Below are positions 36,446-43,855 of a stretch of 64,000 bases of DNA, in pieces. The stretch is from positions 558,001 through 622,000 of the forward strand of contig JAIVFI010000015.1 in NCBI GenBank assembly GCA_025558095.1. Direction: 5' to 3'. The notes beneath the pieces are model-generated. The model saw only the letters and a program-made list of their open reading frames with translations, was not told the DNA's origin and ran no database searches. Position 1 is the stretch's first letter; every line of letters starts with the position of its first letter. The translations under genes were made by a program, and so were the position numbers. The DNA is from Hyaloraphidium curvatum SAG 235-1. Taxonomy: Eukaryota > Fungi > Monoblepharomycota.

Positions 36446-37067
36446 AACGTGCCGGCGCTCGCAGTTGCCAGGAGGCTGCACCACCGGGCCGTCAAGATCG
36501 CCCTGGAGGACCTGCTTTCTCGGTGCGCGACGGGCTCTGAGGTGCCGGATCCGTCCACGGAAGATCCCTACGTCCAGCTGCACTGGACCCTGTGCGCAAC
36601 CTACACGAACCAGCTGCGCTTCCTCTCGAACGGCCAGGGGTTGATAGTCGCCGCCCTCCCGCTTCTCGCGGTGTGCGGTATCGTCAACGCCGCCGTAGGC
36701 CGCTGCGTCCCGGCCTGGATAGCCCTCATCTTCTGCTACTTCGCAGTCTGGTTCGCCGTGCCCACGGCCATGGTCGCCGTCTGGAACCGCAACATCGTCT
36801 CGGTCGCGGAGCTGTACCGCAACGCGCAGGAGAGGCTGGTGCTCCTCGAGCCCGAGTCGGCATCTCCCGCGGCGCAGGAGCGGCACGGGAGGCGTTGGGC
36901 CTGCTGAGGGAGGGCATCGCCGCGCACAGGGGAACGTTCATGGGGTTGACGGTCCGGCTGGGAACCGTGAGAACTTACCTGGCCACGCTCTTCAAGGCTG
37001 CTGGGCCTGTGGACGCTGGCGGGGGGCCGGGATCGCGATCGCGGTCGACTCGGTCTGCCCGGGGTAG
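36446..37067 (+). pseudogene. Frameshifted partial duplicate (copy C') of the 7-TM gene at 39613-41085
   Basis: Near-identical to 40459-41085. There is a 1-nt deletion near 36893 (ggaggcgttgg vs ggaggctgttgg) and further indels near 36995-37020. Confidence 0.9.
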
Positions 37068-37106
37068 ATTACATATGCGAACGTGACAGAGTGCAACAAG
37101 GCAAGA

Positions 37107-38552
37107 TCACGCCGCCACCGCAAGCGCTGCCATTGCAACCAGTGTCCCCATCCATCCGGAAGCCCCCGAGGCTCCGACCCGCACCGCGCCCGACTCGGGC
37201 CTCGCATCCGTCGGCGGGGGGGGCTCCCCCGGGCACGACTCCACACGTCCCGTCGCGAAGACCAGTTCCGCCCTATCACACCACGCGGCCCTCTGGGTGC
37301 CATTGGTCCGCTCCGGGCACAGAAAGCCGGCGACGACGCGATTGTTTACCAGGGCCGCCGGCGCGGGCTCGCTGGGGGCCAGCTCTGTGCATTCACCGTC
37401 GACGAACCACGAGCATGCCGGGCCCGAGAAAAACGCCAGATCCGGGACGAAGGTACCGTTCCGCGGGCCGGCGCAGGCGACCCGCGGGCCGCGCCCGCCG
37501 TCCGCCGGGGTCAGCTCGGCGGCGAGGAAGTAGTGCCCCTGGTCATCGGGGTGGTAGGAGCGCAGGCACCGCGTGGTGCCTGCCTCCGGTGGGCATCCGG
37601 GCTGCTCGCAGAGGGGTTCGGGCGGGAGGGTGTCGTTGAGCGCCAGGGCGAGCGCGGCGGGGCACCACGGGAAGGTCGATGCCATGCCGTTGCAGGCGAC
37701 GTTGTTCGGAAAGCCTTTCACAGCGAGGCTGTAGTCGGGGCCGGGGAAGAGATGCGTGCATCCTTGGTCGCAAAAGTAGGCGCAGGAAAGCTCGGTTCGG
37801 AGCGGAAGCCCGTTCGGATTCGAGGGGAAGCCCGTTGCGCACTGGCCGTCCGTTTGGTTCCCGAAGCCGATGCGGCGAACCGATATGTACAGCCCCGGTA
37901 AAGGGCCGTCGCAGGTGCGCATGCATGTCCAGTCGCCGGTCCAGGGCGTGTTGTTGGCGACCAGGTGGGACAGGTCGGAGCAGCTGGCCGATTCCGGGAC
38001 CGGCGTGCCGAACAGCGACGAGTGCGCCTCGACGCACCACGGCACAAACGAGGTGATGTTGGTGATGTTCTTCTCCCCGTCCGGCCCAATGCATTCGGTC
38101 GGCCCGGCCGACTGCGGTGCCGGGCCGATGGCGTCGAGGCACCACGGGTCCGAGAAGAGCGTGCAAGTGCCGTTCCCCCGGCAGGCAACCGACGCGCTGC
38201 CGTACCACCCCGCCGCGCGTGCGTCCTCGACAGCGACGAACGCGCAGCCCAGGGACGGGATGCGCACGCAGCTGCCGCGCCGCTCGCACTCGGCCGGCCC
38301 CGGCGCGAAATCCCGACCGCGCACCCGCCGGCCGACGCCGACCACCCGGTCGCCGCCCTCGCACGCGCCGACGCAGCGCACCCGCGACCCGCCGTAGCCG
38401 CTGTCAGACCAGCGGCCGTAGACGCAGTTGATGAGGCCCGTGGCGGGGTCGAGCCATTCCTGCTGGTTGAGGCCGCTGTGCGAGGCCCGGGAGGCGGGCA
38501 CAAGGACGAGGAGGGCGACTGCAGAGAGGTAGCAGACAGTGAGTGTTCGCAT
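37107..38552 (-). CDS. Secreted Cys-rich protein with possible GPI-anchor signal
   Basis: Signal peptide MRTLTVCYLSAVALLVLVPASRA, many Cys, and a small-residue omega region followed by hydrophobic C-terminus ASGASGWMGTLVAMAALAVAA. Confidence 0.7.
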   Translation of the reverse strand: MRTLTVCYLSAVALLVLVPASRASHSGLNQQEWLDPATGLINCVYGRWSDSGYGGSRVRCVGACEGGDRVVGVGRRVRGRDFAPGPAECERRGSCVRIPSLGCAFVAVEDARAAGWYGSASVACRGNGTCTLFSDPWCLDAIGPAPQSAGPTECIGPDGEKNITNITSFVPWCVEAHSSLFGTPVPESASCSDLSHLVANNTPWTGDWTCMRTCDGPLPGLYISVRRIGFGNQTDGQCATGFPSNPNGLPLRTELSCAYFCDQGCTHLFPGPDYSLAVKGFPNNVACNGMASTFPWCPAALALALNDTLPPEPLCEQPGCPPEAGTTRCLRSYHPDDQGHYFLAAELTPADGGRGPRVACAGPRNGTFVPDLAFFSGPACSWFVDGECTELAPSEPAPAALVNNRVVAGFLCPERTNGTQRAAWCDRAELVFATGRVESCPGEPPPPTDARPESGAVRVGASGASGWMGTLVAMAALAVAA

Positions 38553-38750
38553 AGGTGTGTTTGGTTCAGTTTTGTCGTGTGACTCAGTGAGGGGCGGAGC
38601 AGCGGCAAGTTCGGGAAGGCGGGGGGGGGTTTCTCATTCAATCCGCGGATCCGGGAGACAGTCGCTTGGACACGGACCCAACCAGAATCAATCGTGCATC
38701 TGCCCGGCATCCGCCGAGGCTCGTCTCGGGCCCCCCTCGGTTCTGGGGCT

Positions 38751-38845
38751 TGCATGGCCCTCGCCGCCCGCGCAGCCGTGGTGACCCGCTGCGGCGAGTG
38801 CGACGCCAACGCGCACTGCGAGTACAGCGTGGTGTTCGGCGAGCA
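38751..38845 (+). repeat. About 95-bp orphan copy of the 5' coding region of the gene at 43148
   Basis: Near-identical to 43181-43275 (CGECDANAHCEYSVVFGE); similarity ends abruptly. Confidence 0.85.
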
Positions 38846-39612: not shown

Positions 39613-41085
39613 ATGGCAGTGCTATTCACGGACCGCGAGTGGCTCGCCCTGTTCCCGGCCCAACCTCCGCCGGACCCGTCTCTCTTCCGCGGGCCACTTC
39701 CCGACCCGGCAAGGGAGCTCCGCGCCGCGGACGCGCTTTCCTTCGACGCGCTCGTCTCCAATCTGCCGGACGCGCTCCTGCGAGCGCAGGTGATCGCCGC
39801 GCGCCGCCTGGAGCCGCTGGCCGCCCGTTTCATTGTGCGCTACTCGGCGCTCGGCGCACTGACAATGGCGCTCTACGGCGCCGCAGTGGCCTTCAACGAC
39901 GGGCGGTACGGAGGGCCGCAGGTCGCCACGGGCTTCGCGACCATCGCCGCGCCTTTCGCCTTCCTCATTGGGACCATCGCGGCTACCCGCTTCCGCGAAG
40001 GCAGCTGGGCCCGCATCTACCGCCCCGTCGGCGAGCTCAAGAAGGGCGAGGTTCCGGCTCCCGCGGAAGACTTTAGCGCCCACCCTTTCGCGGGCATTGC
40101 CCGCTGGACCCAGCTGGTCTCCTTGCCGCCCAAGGCGGACGCCAAGGACGAGGAGAACGGCGGCGCGTCCGCGCCGACGGACAAGCTGACGGCGCACGAC
40201 CCGGACGACCCGGATTGCCCCTGCGGCCTTGCCACATGCCTCGGAGACGCGCCGAGATCGGCCGGCAGGCAGCGCGTGGTCCAGGTCGTCGTCCAGCTTG
40301 TGGAAGAGCTGGTGCAATTCGTTTTGACCGTGTGGACGCCGCTCGTGGTGCTCGGGGCGTCCGTGTGGACCTCGCCGTGGTCTGCACCGATCGCGGCGCT
40401 GTACTGCTGCGTGCTCGTGGTGCACGCCCCCGCGACCACCTTAGGAACGACGCAGACCAATTTGCCGGCGCTCGCGGTTGCCAGGAGGCTCCACCACCGG
40501 GCCGTGAAGATCGCCCTGGAGGACCTGCTTTCTCGGTGCGCGACTGGTTCCGAGGTGCCGGATCCGTCCACGGAAGAGCGCTACGTCCAGCTCCACTGGA
40601 CGTTGTGCGCGACTTACACGAACCATCTGCACTTCCTCTCGAACGGCCAGGGGTTGATTGTCACCGCGCTCCCGCTTCTCGCAGTGTGCGGGATCGTCAA
40701 CGCCGCCGTAGGCCGCTGCGTCCCGGCCTGGATAGCCCTCATCTTCTGCTACTTCGCAGTCTGGTTCGCCGTGCCCACGGCCATGGTCGCCGTCTGGAAC
40801 CGCAACATCGTCTCGGTCGCGGAGCTGTACCGCAACGCGCAGGAGAGGCTGGTGCTCCTCGAGCCCGAGTCGGCATCTCCCGCGGCGCTGGAGCGCCACG
40901 GGAGGCTGTTGGGCCTGCTGAGGGAGGGCATCGCCGCGCGCAGGGGAACGTTCATGGGGTTGACGGTCGGGCTGGGGACCGTGAGGACGTACCTGGCCAC
41001 GCTCTTCACGGTGCTGCTGGGCCTGTGGACGCTGCTGCGGGGGGCCGGGATCGCGATCACGGTCGACTCGGTCTGCCCGGGATAG
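39613..41085 (+). CDS. 7-TM family member (copy C), gustatory-receptor-like/7TM ion channel candidate
   Basis: FTDREWLALFP, HPFAGIARW, HDPDDPDCPCGLATCLG, RYVQLHWTL, GRCVP, GTFMGLTVGLGTVRTYLATLFT..GLWTLLRGAG..DSVCPG. Confidence 0.8.
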   Translation: MAVLFTDREWLALFPAQPPPDPSLFRGPLPDPARELRAADALSFDALVSNLPDALLRAQVIAARRLEPLAARFIVRYSALGALTMALYGAAVAFNDGRYGGPQVATGFATIAAPFAFLIGTIAATRFREGSWARIYRPVGELKKGEVPAPAEDFSAHPFAGIARWTQLVSLPPKADAKDEENGGASAPTDKLTAHDPDDPDCPCGLATCLGDAPRSAGRQRVVQVVVQLVEELVQFVLTVWTPLVVLGASVWTSPWSAPIAALYCCVLVVHAPATTLGTTQTNLPALAVARRLHHRAVKIALEDLLSRCATGSEVPDPSTEERYVQLHWTLCATYTNHLHFLSNGQGLIVTALPLLAVCGIVNAAVGRCVPAWIALIFCYFAVWFAVPTAMVAVWNRNIVSVAELYRNAQERLVLLEPESASPAALERHGRLLGLLREGIAARRGTFMGLTVGLGTVRTYLATLFTVLLGLWTLLRGAGIAITVDSVCPG

Positions 41086-41311
41086 ATAGCCCGACAGCAC
41101 ATGCTATGCACACGAATGTAACGCAGATTGCACGAAGGGACAACCACGACGCCGCTGCAAGGCCGGCCACAATTACTAGCGCCACTATCCGTGCTGTGGA
41201 ATTCAATCAGTCAATGGAGGATTTGACTTCGTTGATTGCACCAGCCTTGGAATGACTGACTGACAGACAGTGCGCAACGCGTGAATGGCACCGTGGGGTT
41301 CGTGCGCTCAA

Positions 41312-42844
41312 ATGGAACCTTGGGTGCGGAGCACTCTCCTCTGCGCCGTGCTATCGGTCGCTTTGGCGGGCGGGGCGGCGGGGGCGCCGTGCACTCTTGA
41401 CGGAGGGTGTGTGGCGCTGCCAGCGCATCTGCCGCCGCTGGCCTTCTTAGTGCCTACCGTCCCTGCTTCGATGCAGCCGGTTCATCGAATCATGCACCGA
41501 CGTCCGGCTGGACGGCTCTGTCGTGCGCGCGTCGTGCATGAACTGCGCCGGCAGAGCATCGTCCGCGGACTTCGACCTGCGGGCCGCGGTCGGCAACACG
41601 GACGGGCAGCTCTTCTTTCCGGGCACAGGATTGACCTCGTCGTGTGTTCTACGCTCTCTTTCGGTCGCGGGCGGCCGGGCGATGCTGGCGGCATCCTGCT
41701 CGGACCACAAAGGGACGCCGCGGGAAACGAGCCTGGATCTCAACTACGTGCTCAACAACGGCTGCGGAGTCCTCAAAGTATTTCGCTCGGATTGCACCGT
41801 CGAGGGCTCTATTGCGTCCTCTAATCCCGGAGCCACTTGCAGCTTGGATGACAAGTTGGTCGTGCTCTCCCCTTTGAAGGCGGACGAACTGAACCCGAGC
41901 CGTTCCGCTCACAGCGGGTTCTCGCAGTCGTGCTCGGCCATGAGGCTGGACGGTTTTGTTCTCCGCGCGTCATGCATCGCCTGCGACGGCACAACGTCTT
42001 CCACGAACATCGACCTGAGCAGAATCATCACCAACAGCTTTGGCACGCTCTCTTTTCCGGGGCAAGATTTTGCCCTGACGTGCAGCTCTGTTTCGCTAGT
42101 TTCGTCCAACGGTCCGTCCCTGCCCTCCGCCACCAGGTGATAGTGCTGATTTCGCGACGATCGGCCTCCGCAGGTGGACCAAACAAGACTCTCAGCGCAT
42201 CCTGCCGCGACGGCAAAGTCAGCACGCTGTACGCAACCCAGATGGATCTGGACTACATCCTGGCTAATCGGTGTGGACGCCTGGCCGCCGCCGGATCGGG
42301 TTGTACGTTCGTCGGCTCTTCGTCACTGGCTTCACCGCCCGCCGCGCAGCCTGTCGCACAACCTTCCGCCCAGCCCGTCGCGCAACCCTCCGCGCAGCCA
42401 GTCGCGCAACCCTCCGCCGCCGCTCCTACGATTTCCCAACCGGTCTCGGGCCTATCCATGGGCGCGATCGCCGGGATCGCGGTCGGCGCTTCGGTTGGCG
42501 CAGCCGCCCTTGGCGCCGGCCTGTTTGTTCTGCTGCGTCGGCCCGCTCACGGCTCACACGTCCTCGAGGAGCCCGAGGCGGTAGCATTGCCTCCTCACGA
42601 TGCCTCCCCGGACTTTGGGTCCAACGGGGACGCCCCGGCCCGCCCTTCTCCAAACGAAGACGTCGCGGCCCGTCCCCCGCCCAACGAGGACGCCGCGACC
42701 TGCGTGATCTGCATGGACCGGCCGAAGAACACCGTGGTCCGGCCCTGCAAGCACCTGGCCATGTGCGCAGAATGCGCCGCAACGGTCGAGAGCTGCCCGC
42801 TGTGCCGCGGAAGGGTGGCCAGCGTGGAGACGCTCTTCGTGTGA
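41312..42844 (+). CDS. Single-pass membrane protein: signal peptide, two CVNH (cyanovirin-N homology) domains, TM, C3HC4 RING
   Basis: GFIESC..RLDGSVVRASC..DLRAAVGNTDGQL and GFSQSC..LDGFVLRASC..IDLSRIITNSFGTL, QPVAQPSA x3 linker, TM GAIAGIAVGASVGAAALGAGLFVLL-RR, then CVICMDRPKNTVVRPCKHLAMCAECAATVESCPLCR. Three introns inferred. Confidence 0.85.
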
Positions 42845-43147: not shown

Positions 43148-43855
43148 ATGGTCCTCTGGTCGGCGCTGCTCCTCGGGGCGTGCCTGGCCCTCGCGGCCCG
43201 CGCAGCCGCGGCGAAGCGCTGCGGCGAGTGCGACGCCAACGCGCACTGCGAGTACAGCGTGGTTTTCGGCGAGCACTGCGTGTGCGACCGGGGGTTCAGC
43301 GGGTCGGGCGCGGCGGGCGGCTGCCGCGAGGACGCGGCCGCGCAGCTGTACGACCTCTGCCACGCCGGCGGGCGGTGCTGCGCGGACCCGCTGGGCAGCA
43401 CGGCCGTGACGTCGCGGCGGGACTGCGAGGCCGCCTGCGACGCGCACCCGGGGTGCAAGTACGTCGCCTTCGACGCCTCCGGCGGCGGTTGCCACCTCTT
43501 CGGCTCGTGCTCGGCCCGCACCCACGGCGGCCCCTGGGAGCTGCGCGCACGCAACGGGTCGGCGTCGTGCCCCGCCAGCGCGGGCTGCAGGGCCGACCTG
43601 CGGATCACCGCCACCCACGCCTCCGTGCGCAGGGGAAACTCAGTCACCCTCCGCGCCACCGTGCGGCTCGCCGACACCAACAAGCCGGCCCGCAACATGC
43701 GCATCACCTTCGCCGTGCGCGGCACTGCGGCGGGGAGCGCAACGACCGACCGCCAGGGGGTGGCGACGGTCAGGTTCAGGTACCCGGCGGGCTTTCCGAA
43801 GGGGCGGCAGAGCTACACGGCCGCCCACGCCGGGTCGTCGAGCTACAACGCGTAG
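43148..43855 (+). CDS. Secreted EGF + PAN/apple + bacterial Ig-like domain protein
   Basis: Signal peptide, CDANAHC..CVCDRGFSGSG (EGF), DCEAACDAHPGCKYVAFDASGGGCHLF (PAN), GNSVTLRATV..ITF..GSATTDRQGVAT..YTAAHAGSSSY (Big-like). Confidence 0.8.
   Translation: MVLWSALLLGACLALAARAAAAKRCGECDANAHCEYSVVFGEHCVCDRGFSGSGAAGGCREDAAAQLYDLCHAGGRCCADPLGSTAVTSRRDCEAACDAHPGCKYVAFDASGGGCHLFGSCSARTHGGPWELRARNGSASCPASAGCRADLRITATHASVRRGNSVTLRATVRLADTNKPARNMRITFAVRGTAAGSATTDRQGVATVRFRYPAGFPKGRQSYTAAHAGSSSYNA

Follow-up and report, generated by a model that had tools for sequence, protein, structure and literature searches.

A four-exon gene joining CVNH and RING domains

Hyaloraphidium curvatum is an aquatic member of the Monoblepharomycota, an early-diverging fungal phylum. 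We analysed a stretch of 64,000 nucleotides (nt) from its 31.9-Mb assembly (contig 15, positions 558001-622000; hereafter the window, with positions counted from its first letter), which is eukaryotic, GC-rich DNA with introns of 60-70 nt, and which contains on the plus strand at 41312-42844 one four-exon gene coding for two domains of the cyanovirin-type CVNH family and a C-terminal RING domain (hereafter the CVNH-RING gene). A previous sequence-only reading had described at this place a signal peptide, two CVNH domains, a stalk made of QPVAQPSA repeats, one transmembrane (TM) helix followed by two arginines, a duplicated ARPxPNED motif and a C-terminal RING resembling those of IAP proteins and MDM2, and each of these elements was recovered at the same positions by Pfam searches, hydropathy analysis and repeat finding. 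The features of the gene are as follows:

41312-41406 (+): predicted exon 1, with the start codon, a signal-peptide-like segment and one Cys past the likely cleavage site (translation and hydropathy)
41407-41476 (+): intron 1, 70 nt, GT..CAG, predicted from its splice sites, the phase fit and the 70-nt intron of a paralog
41477-41854 (+): exon 2, with the first CVNH domain (CVNH1, ~41481-41777) and a Cys-containing inter-domain linker (Pfam; RNA on 41506-41854)
41855-41914 (+): intron 2, 60 nt, GT..AG, in frame and stop-free, reading through as an open reading frame (ORF); skipped by a spliced RNA contig and by the public gene model
41915-42111 (+): exon 3, N-terminal half of the second CVNH domain (CVNH2), supported by the spliced contig, the public model and domain alignments
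42112-42173 (+): intron 3, 62 nt, GT..AG, at the mid-point of CVNH2 and with in-frame stops; skipped by the spliced contig and the public model
42174-42844 (+): exon 4, with the C-terminal half of CVNH2 (to 42283, with an NKT sequon), stalk, TM helix, predicted cytosolic linker and RING; stop codon at 42842-42844
42338-42418 (+): stalk, a 24-nt tandem repeat in 3.4 copies coding for QPVAQPSA (Tandem Repeats Finder score 113)
42458-42535 (+): single TM helix, residues 267-292 of the public model (hydropathy), with RR next (42536-42541)
42629-42697 (+): 30-nt tandem repeat in 2.3 copies on the predicted cytosolic side, coding for the duplicated ARPxPNED (Tandem Repeats Finder score 82)
42701-42805 (+): C3HC4 RING (zf-C3HC4_3, IAP-like; Pfam PF13920, E 2.4e-14), 12 residues from the C-terminus

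The claim that CVNH and RING are encoded by one gene is borne out by transcript contigs, a continuous reading frame and the public gene model, all of which agree. Since GT..AG intervals are missing from its contigs, one public sequencing run was read as a transcriptome, and two of these contigs lie on the gene. The longer one (record 5, 857 nt, depth 8) is spliced and aligns with 41506-41854, 41915-42110/11 and 42173/4-42484, so that it spans introns 2 and 3 and extends from CVNH1 via CVNH2 and the stalk into the TM helix, while the shorter one (record 6, 289 nt, depth 3) aligns with 42549-42837 and covers the tail and the RING. The RNA check suggested for a joint CVNH-RING transcript was thus answered in part, with CVNH1 to the TM helix on one contig, the RING on another, and 42485-42548 left unbridged. 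We read this gap as a break in coverage and not as a gene boundary; it sits in the middle of the TM helix, within one continuous frame that has neither a stop nor a start there, and the open frame is uninterrupted from 42174 to 42844. In a word-index search of public proteins the exon 4 frame was 100% identical to DFJ74DRAFT_670337, a protein of 394 amino acids (aa) with precomputed Pfam matches PF08881 and PF13920, and the public model of this protein has exactly introns 2 and 3 and joins CVNH and RING in a single product. There is no room for two genes, because the preceding gene reaches to 41085 and the following one begins at 43148. The gene model of a RING-less paralog likewise joins exons in the middle of a CVNH domain, and the GC content at third codon positions (0.74-0.77 in exons 2-4 and 0.74 in the short exon 1, vs 0.52-0.55 in introns 1 and 3 and 0.80 in the in-frame intron 2) lends weak support to the exon structure given above. 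It is clear that the CVNH-RING gene is a single expressed gene.

Of the three introns originally proposed, the second and third are skipped by the spliced contig, while the first is crossed by no RNA contig and was placed from the DNA itself. Position 1 of the Pfam CVNH profile falls on the second codon after 41478, and since no ATG precedes this profile position in the CVNH1 frame, which is closed by a stop at 41448-41450, an upstream exon is required. The GT at 41407 and the CAG ending at 41476 link exon 1 in phase to exon 2, with the start codon at 41312 (an alternative in-frame ATG is present at 41285) and with 31 signal-peptide-like first codons, for which an 11-residue Kyte-Doolittle window reaches up to 2.8. 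The order of signal-peptide exon, 70-nt intron and CVNH is also that of a RING-less paralog on contig 1, and the pattern C-x5-[NR]F-x2-SC across the predicted exon 1/2 join is the same pattern as in this paralog. These features point to a signal-peptide exon 1 and an extracytoplasmic location of the CVNH part. The public model starts at Met 41538, and therefore has no signal peptide and has the first ~20 CVNH profile positions cut off. The public models of both H. curvatum CVNH genes (the 394-aa DFJ74DRAFT_670337 and the 194-aa KAI9034156.1 of contig 1) begin at internal Met codons and are without the signal-peptide exon and the first CVNH1 strands (window 41312-41540; contig 1 locus 1248-1460), and as a consequence automated annotation would mislocalise both proteins to the cytosol.

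Family membership of the domains and predicted topology

Against a Pfam cut-off of 24.5 bits for CVNH (PF08881), the exon 2-3 frame scored 97.2 bits (E 1.1e-27), with profile positions 1-102 corresponding to residues 2-100 of the exon 2 frame, and the public model scored 89.4 bits (E 2.9e-25) with two domains. A phmmer search of the PDB matched tandem cyanovirin-N (1.2e-14) and CrCVNH (2jzj, 1.6e-13), and also CYT-CVNH (5k79), and all four Cys residues of the canonical cyanovirin-N disulfides (C8-C22 and C58-C73) align in both CVNH domains. An AlphaFold (AF2) model of CVNH2 made from a 17-row alignment had a mean predicted local distance difference test score (pLDDT) of 89.2 and a predicted template modelling score (pTM) of 0.80, whereas single-sequence AlphaFold of the whole public model gave a pLDDT of 37. 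Foldseek placed the CVNH2 model on cyanovirin-N 2pys with E 1.4e-10, a target-normalised template modelling score (TM-score) of 0.93 and a root-mean-square deviation (rmsd) of 1.0 Å; across cyanovirin-N and its homologues the target-normalised TM-scores were 0.83-0.94, with an rmsd of 0.9-1.8 Å on the cyanovirin-N crystal structures. All matches at E <= 0.001 (25/25) were CVNH entries, and the structural matches include dimannose complexes of CVNH lectins. The protein is therefore a true member of the CVNH family with a cyanovirin fold.

The likeness to the CVNH lectins (cyanobacterial CV-N, fern CrCVNH and the ascomycete proteins TbCVNH, NcCVNH, GzCVNH and MoCVNH) extends to family, fold, pseudo-repeat and both disulfides at an rmsd of ~1 Å, and a tandem arrangement is also found in other CVNH proteins. 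Described members of the family are, to our knowledge, either soluble or fused to LysM, and the other CVNH matches found in this study carry CAP or glycosidase-like parts but, unlike the CVNH-RING protein, no TM helix or RING. A further difference is an extra Cys pair near sugar site A, formed by a C-x2-C after the second canonical Cys and a final N-x-C-G motif, which is shared by all H. curvatum CVNH domains (window 41538-42283; contig 1 locus 1432-2303) and is absent as a pair from the other 14 aligned CVNH sequences, 1/14 of which has the first Cys. By alignment mapping these two residues fall on T25 and D95 of cyanovirin-N, within sugar site A, and they would probably form a third disulfide across that site. 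The sugar-contact positions Q6, N42, N93 and T57 of cyanovirin-N are kept, as mapped from the PDB phmmer alignment. Cyanovirin-family lectins bind the high-mannose glycans of foreign surfaces, and by analogy the CVNH domains described here would be expected to bind mannose-type glycans. In a survey of lectin evolution the cyanovirin domain was mostly fungal, with a patchy distribution (PMC6362431).

The helix at residues 267-292 is the only hydrophobic 19-mer above 1.6 in the public model, and is rich in Gly and Ala with many small-xxx-small (GxxxG/A) motifs, while the stalk in front of it has a weak Pfam PT-repeat match. We place the CVNH part on the extracytoplasmic side because of the signal-peptide-like exon 1, the even number of Cys residues in the ectodomain (16, when residues from mature exon 1 and from the beginning of exon 2 are included), its one NKT sequon, the RR following the TM helix and the signal-peptide exon of the paralog. 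The predicted topology is thus type I and single-pass, with the CVNH tandem and the Pro/Gln/Ala stalk outside and the linker and RING in the cytosol, the linker between TM helix and RING being predicted to be disordered.

The RING scored 53.3 bits (E 2.4e-14) with Pfam zf-C3HC4_3 (PF13920, cut-off 27 bits), and all eight zinc ligands are present (C348, C351, C363, H365, C369, C372, C379 and C382), at positions almost invariant among 135 RING matches of the protein search described below. The alignment with cIAP1 (6hpr) is ungapped (E 2.3e-11), and the next-best solved relatives are cIAP2, BIRC7, CGRRF1, XIAP, MYLIP, MGRN1 and MDM2. The tail contains a CPxCR motif, with Arg after the last Cys, and a penultimate Phe, and aligns with cIAP1/2, BIRC7 and XIAP; the CPxCR motif and C-terminal aromatic tail are what let IAP-type RINGs dimerise and activate ubiquitin-charged E2 (E2~Ub). 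The E-values obtained for the CVNH and RING matches are much too low to be expected by chance. While the protein is a true member of the C3HC4_3 family, its activity as an E3 ubiquitin ligase is suggested by analogy with these relatives. In class of best score, ligand spacing, CPxCR and short aromatic tail it resembles the IAP-type C-terminal RINGs (cIAP1/2, XIAP and BIRC7, and also MYLIP, CGRRF1, MUL1 and MDM2), but those proteins are cytosolic (with BIR or FERM domains) or located in the mitochondrial outer membrane (MUL1, with a GIDE domain), and none has a comparable lectin or extracytoplasmic domain.

Relatives of the CVNH-RING protein and neighbouring genes

The sequence-only reading knew of no description of this architecture, and our searches of proteins, metagenomes and literature likewise brought up none. 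An exhaustive phmmer search with the public 394-aa model against 1.84 billion cluster representatives gave 3452 matches at E <= 0.001, with only the query itself below 1e-30. Matches to a single module score 45-60 bits each, so that a protein with both modules is expected at ~90 bits or more, and no match other than the query reached this level. The second match, at 85 bits, is KAI9034156.1 ("Cyanovirin-N [Hyaloraphidium curvatum]"), the contig 1 paralog, which has a tandem CVNH and a signal-peptide exon but no TM helix and no RING, and which is the only close CVNH relative in this search. The top 150 matches were inspected, and a fusion with a CVNH domain too diverged for phmmer would escape; Pfam searches of the best 145 of the 3452 matches found a RING in 135 and CVNH in 11, with both in the query only, and no RING pattern was present in the ten other CVNH matches among these 145. 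A scan of the JGI metagenomes returned three RING-only matches and no CVNH relative, in word-index protein searches neither the exon 4 part nor the CVNH part found anything beyond the protein itself except for one BIRC7 match (through the RING), and a feature search of the ESM Atlas gave no usable match. Full-text literature searches found no description of CVNH or cyanovirin together with a RING, nor of a RING ligase with an extracellular lectin domain. The pairing of CVNH with an IAP-type RING is thus found in no other protein searched.

In the H. curvatum genome itself CVNH is found at two loci, and IAP-like RINGs at seven loci besides the CVNH-RING gene. A signal peptide or an ectodomain is absent from all seven of these RING loci, and a family of receptor-like RING proteins in this species was rejected. 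The nearest RING in the genome (48% identity) is on contig 7 (616692-619892, ORF 1495-2493 on the minus strand of the locus), in a protein of 332 aa with PPxY-like motifs at the N-terminus, a long coiled coil, two adjacent TM helices and a C-terminal RING. A plausible origin for the CVNH-RING gene would be that a gene for a secreted CVNH tandem became fused to the TM-RING end of a gene resembling that on contig 7, the contig 7 gene being a possible donor of this module. Other C3HC4_3 RINGs located behind TM helices were also present among the matches, including a MUL1-like GIDE protein. In one 344-aa protein from the JGI metagenomes a C-terminal C3HC4_3 RING is combined with hydrophobic segments and a Cys-rich region of the ephrin-receptor-like kind, which suggests that uncultured eukaryotes may contain proteins combining other ectodomains with a TM helix and an IAP-like RING.

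The genes adjoining the CVNH-RING gene code for secreted or surface proteins, and parts of both are locally duplicated, with ~4 kb between the copies. Of the upstream gene, which belongs to a seven-transmembrane (7-TM) family, the 3' end occurs at both 36450-37069 and 40463-41087 (93-96% identity); of the downstream EGF/PAN gene, it is the initial ~100 nt that recur, at 38745-38845 and 43175-43275 (92% identity). Two sequence variants were seen among the RNA contigs over 40515-40722, and both 7-TM copies may therefore be expressed. In the upstream duplicate block, the position matching that of the CVNH-RING gene in the downstream block is taken by an ORF of 481 aa on the minus strand (37107-38552) with a signal peptide, many Cys residues and several N-x-S/T sequons, which likely codes for a secreted or surface protein; a second copy of the CVNH-RING gene in this block was ruled out, as this Cys-rich secreted gene occupies it.

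Possible function and competing explanations

The general body plan predicted for the protein is already known. In the PA-TM-RING ligases a signal peptide is followed by a substrate-picking domain on the luminal or extracellular side, one TM helix and a cytosolic RING (PMC4021871), and with this family (RNF13, GRAIL/RNF128, Goliath/Godzilla and the plant RMR proteins) and with RNF43/ZNRF3 the CVNH-RING protein would share the overall plan and probably the logic of a RING that ubiquitinates membrane proteins for endosomal sorting (PMC4021871). It differs from them in its tandem CVNH ectodomain, and there is no sequence relationship beyond the RING. Pfam scans at E up to 1 found no PA family in it, C369 occupies the fifth ligand position, the best profile is C3HC4_3 and zf-RING_2 stays below its cut-off; having no PA domain and a RING that is not of the RING-H2 type, it is not a member of the PA-TM-RING family. 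Recognition of glycans coupled to a RING-dependent ubiquitin ligase is likewise known: the sugar-binding F-box proteins FBXO2/6 are one example, and the luminal lectins OS-9 and XTP3-B, which deliver substrates to the membrane RING ligase HRD1, are another (PMC4021871). In OS-9/Yos9 with HRD1 and in FBXO2/6, however, lectin and ligase are separate polypeptides or both cytosolic, whereas here they would be parts of one membrane-spanning chain, and the lectin folds concerned (MRH and FBA) are unrelated to CVNH. Plant lectin receptor kinases (G-, L- and LysM-type) also combine a lectin ectodomain, one TM helix and a cytosolic enzyme output, but this output is a kinase, of which Pfam scans found no family in the CVNH-RING protein, and they belong to another lectin family and another kingdom. 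What is new is the pairing of a CVNH lectin with an IAP-type RING, predicted to lie on opposite sides of a membrane.

We favour, with a probability of about 0.6, the reading that the gene codes for a glycan-directed single-pass membrane E3, in which multivalent glycan clustering would promote RING dimerisation and ubiquitination of the protein itself or of bound membrane glycoproteins. The two CVNH domains would bind mannose-type glycans carried either by external material or by glycoproteins sharing their membrane or lumen, and such multivalent binding would cluster the protein. RING dimerisation may be favoured by the GxxxG-rich TM helix together with the IAP-type tail, and the RING would recruit ubiquitin-charged E2. 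Cytosolic lysines of the CVNH-RING protein itself or of a bound membrane glycoprotein would become ubiquitinated, leading to endocytosis or vacuolar sorting, so that the protein would in effect be a glycan-directed version of the PA-TM-RING and RNF43/ZNRF3 membrane ligases. Both substrates and cellular location are putative.

Several observations weigh against this reading. The RNA contigs do not cover exon 1 and intron 1, none of those listed bridges the 64 nt within the TM helix, and the transcript depths of 8 and 3 are low. Of the cyanovirin sugar-contact positions, E23, T25, E41, E56 and D95 are replaced (same mapping as above), and the extra Cys pair at the site A position is lineage-specific; with the contacts part kept and part replaced, the sugar specificity is not readable from the sequence. 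Finally, no orthologue was found in the 1.84 billion representatives, the word-index searches or the JGI metagenomes, which means that conservation and purifying selection cannot be assessed and that the gene could prove to be an inconsequential chimera specific to its lineage.

Two other functional readings were considered. The protein could be a cell-surface pattern-recognition receptor, as the sequence-only reading had it, with CVNH sensing the mannose-rich glycans of viruses, bacteria, algae or other fungi and the RING passing this on as a ubiquitin signal for defence or feeding. The stalk and the type I topology do look like those of surface receptors, the foreign high-mannose glycans mentioned above are established ligands of the family, and the neighbouring genes code for surface or secreted proteins; however, neither a signalling partner nor a family expansion nor orthologues were found, the mannose-rich wall and secretory glycoproteins of the fungus itself would make it difficult to discriminate self from non-self, and the evidence in no way separates plasma membrane from endomembranes. 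We consider this unlikely, and no less unlikely a ligase for quality control or sorting in the secretory pathway, in which luminal CVNH would read immature high-mannose N-glycans and the RING would tag membrane glycoproteins for degradation, as a one-chain equivalent of OS-9/Yos9 with HRD1 or a sorting receptor of the RMR/RNF13 type. Luminal lectins feeding a membrane RING ligase are an established mechanism (PMC4021871), but the tail is without an endoplasmic reticulum (ER) retention signal or known sorting motif, the Pro-rich stalk and the secreted paralog point to the cell surface, and the ligases of ER-associated degradation are multi-pass and conserved, whereas the CVNH-RING protein is single-pass and unique. 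In favour of such a role, glycans of the ER and early Golgi are characterised by Man-alpha-1,2-Man, which is the classical ligand of cyanovirin. A role in endomembrane sorting or quality control fits the evidence equally as well as a pattern-recognition receptor.

The remaining explanations deny the gene a selected function or its unity. It could be an evolutionary accident, that is a lineage-specific chimera made by exon shuffling from a CVNH gene like that of contig 1 and a TM-RING end like that of contig 7, transcribed at a low level and with no selected function; no second example was found among the 1.84 billion representatives, the surrounding region is dynamic and locally duplicated, both linkers have young tandem repeats, transcript depth is low, and the nearest RING of the genome (at 48% identity) is also located directly behind TM helices. 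We nevertheless hold this to be decidedly improbable, as the frame is intact over four exons with disulfides, zinc ligands and E2-contact motif all kept, the introns are spliced correctly, the divergence from both putative parents is old (39% and 48% identity), and singleton status is a weak sign of youth because the relatives of H. curvatum have barely been sampled. That a secreted CVNH lectin gene and a small adjacent RING gene have been read as one is hardly credible. The two RNA contigs do leave 42485-42548 unbridged, but this gap falls mid-helix in one frame without stop or start, the first contig has already passed the stalk and entered the TM helix, and the public annotation has a single gene.

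The most far-reaching form of the proposal, which we regard as possible but rather doubtful, is that this would be the first natural lectin wired through a membrane to a RING ligase, with the binding of mannose glycans gating cytosolic ubiquitination by clustering and dimerising the RING, and hence a glycan receptor with ubiquitin as its output that may serve in non-self recognition, in the sensing of prey or substrate, or in glycoprotein surveillance. The weight of the finding is limited by its confinement to a single species with no orthologues, and by a function predicted from family membership. If the parts work as suggested, sugar recognition on one side of the membrane would be turned into ubiquitination on the other side by a single chain, a coupling otherwise known from separate proteins (OS-9/Yos9 with HRD1) or from protein-binding ectodomains (PA-TM-RING, RNF43/ZNRF3). 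If true, this would add a new type to a CVNH family of soluble and LysM-linked lectins, and would provide a compact natural template for the glycan-directed degradation of membrane proteins and a natural counterpart of engineered cell-surface protein degraders.

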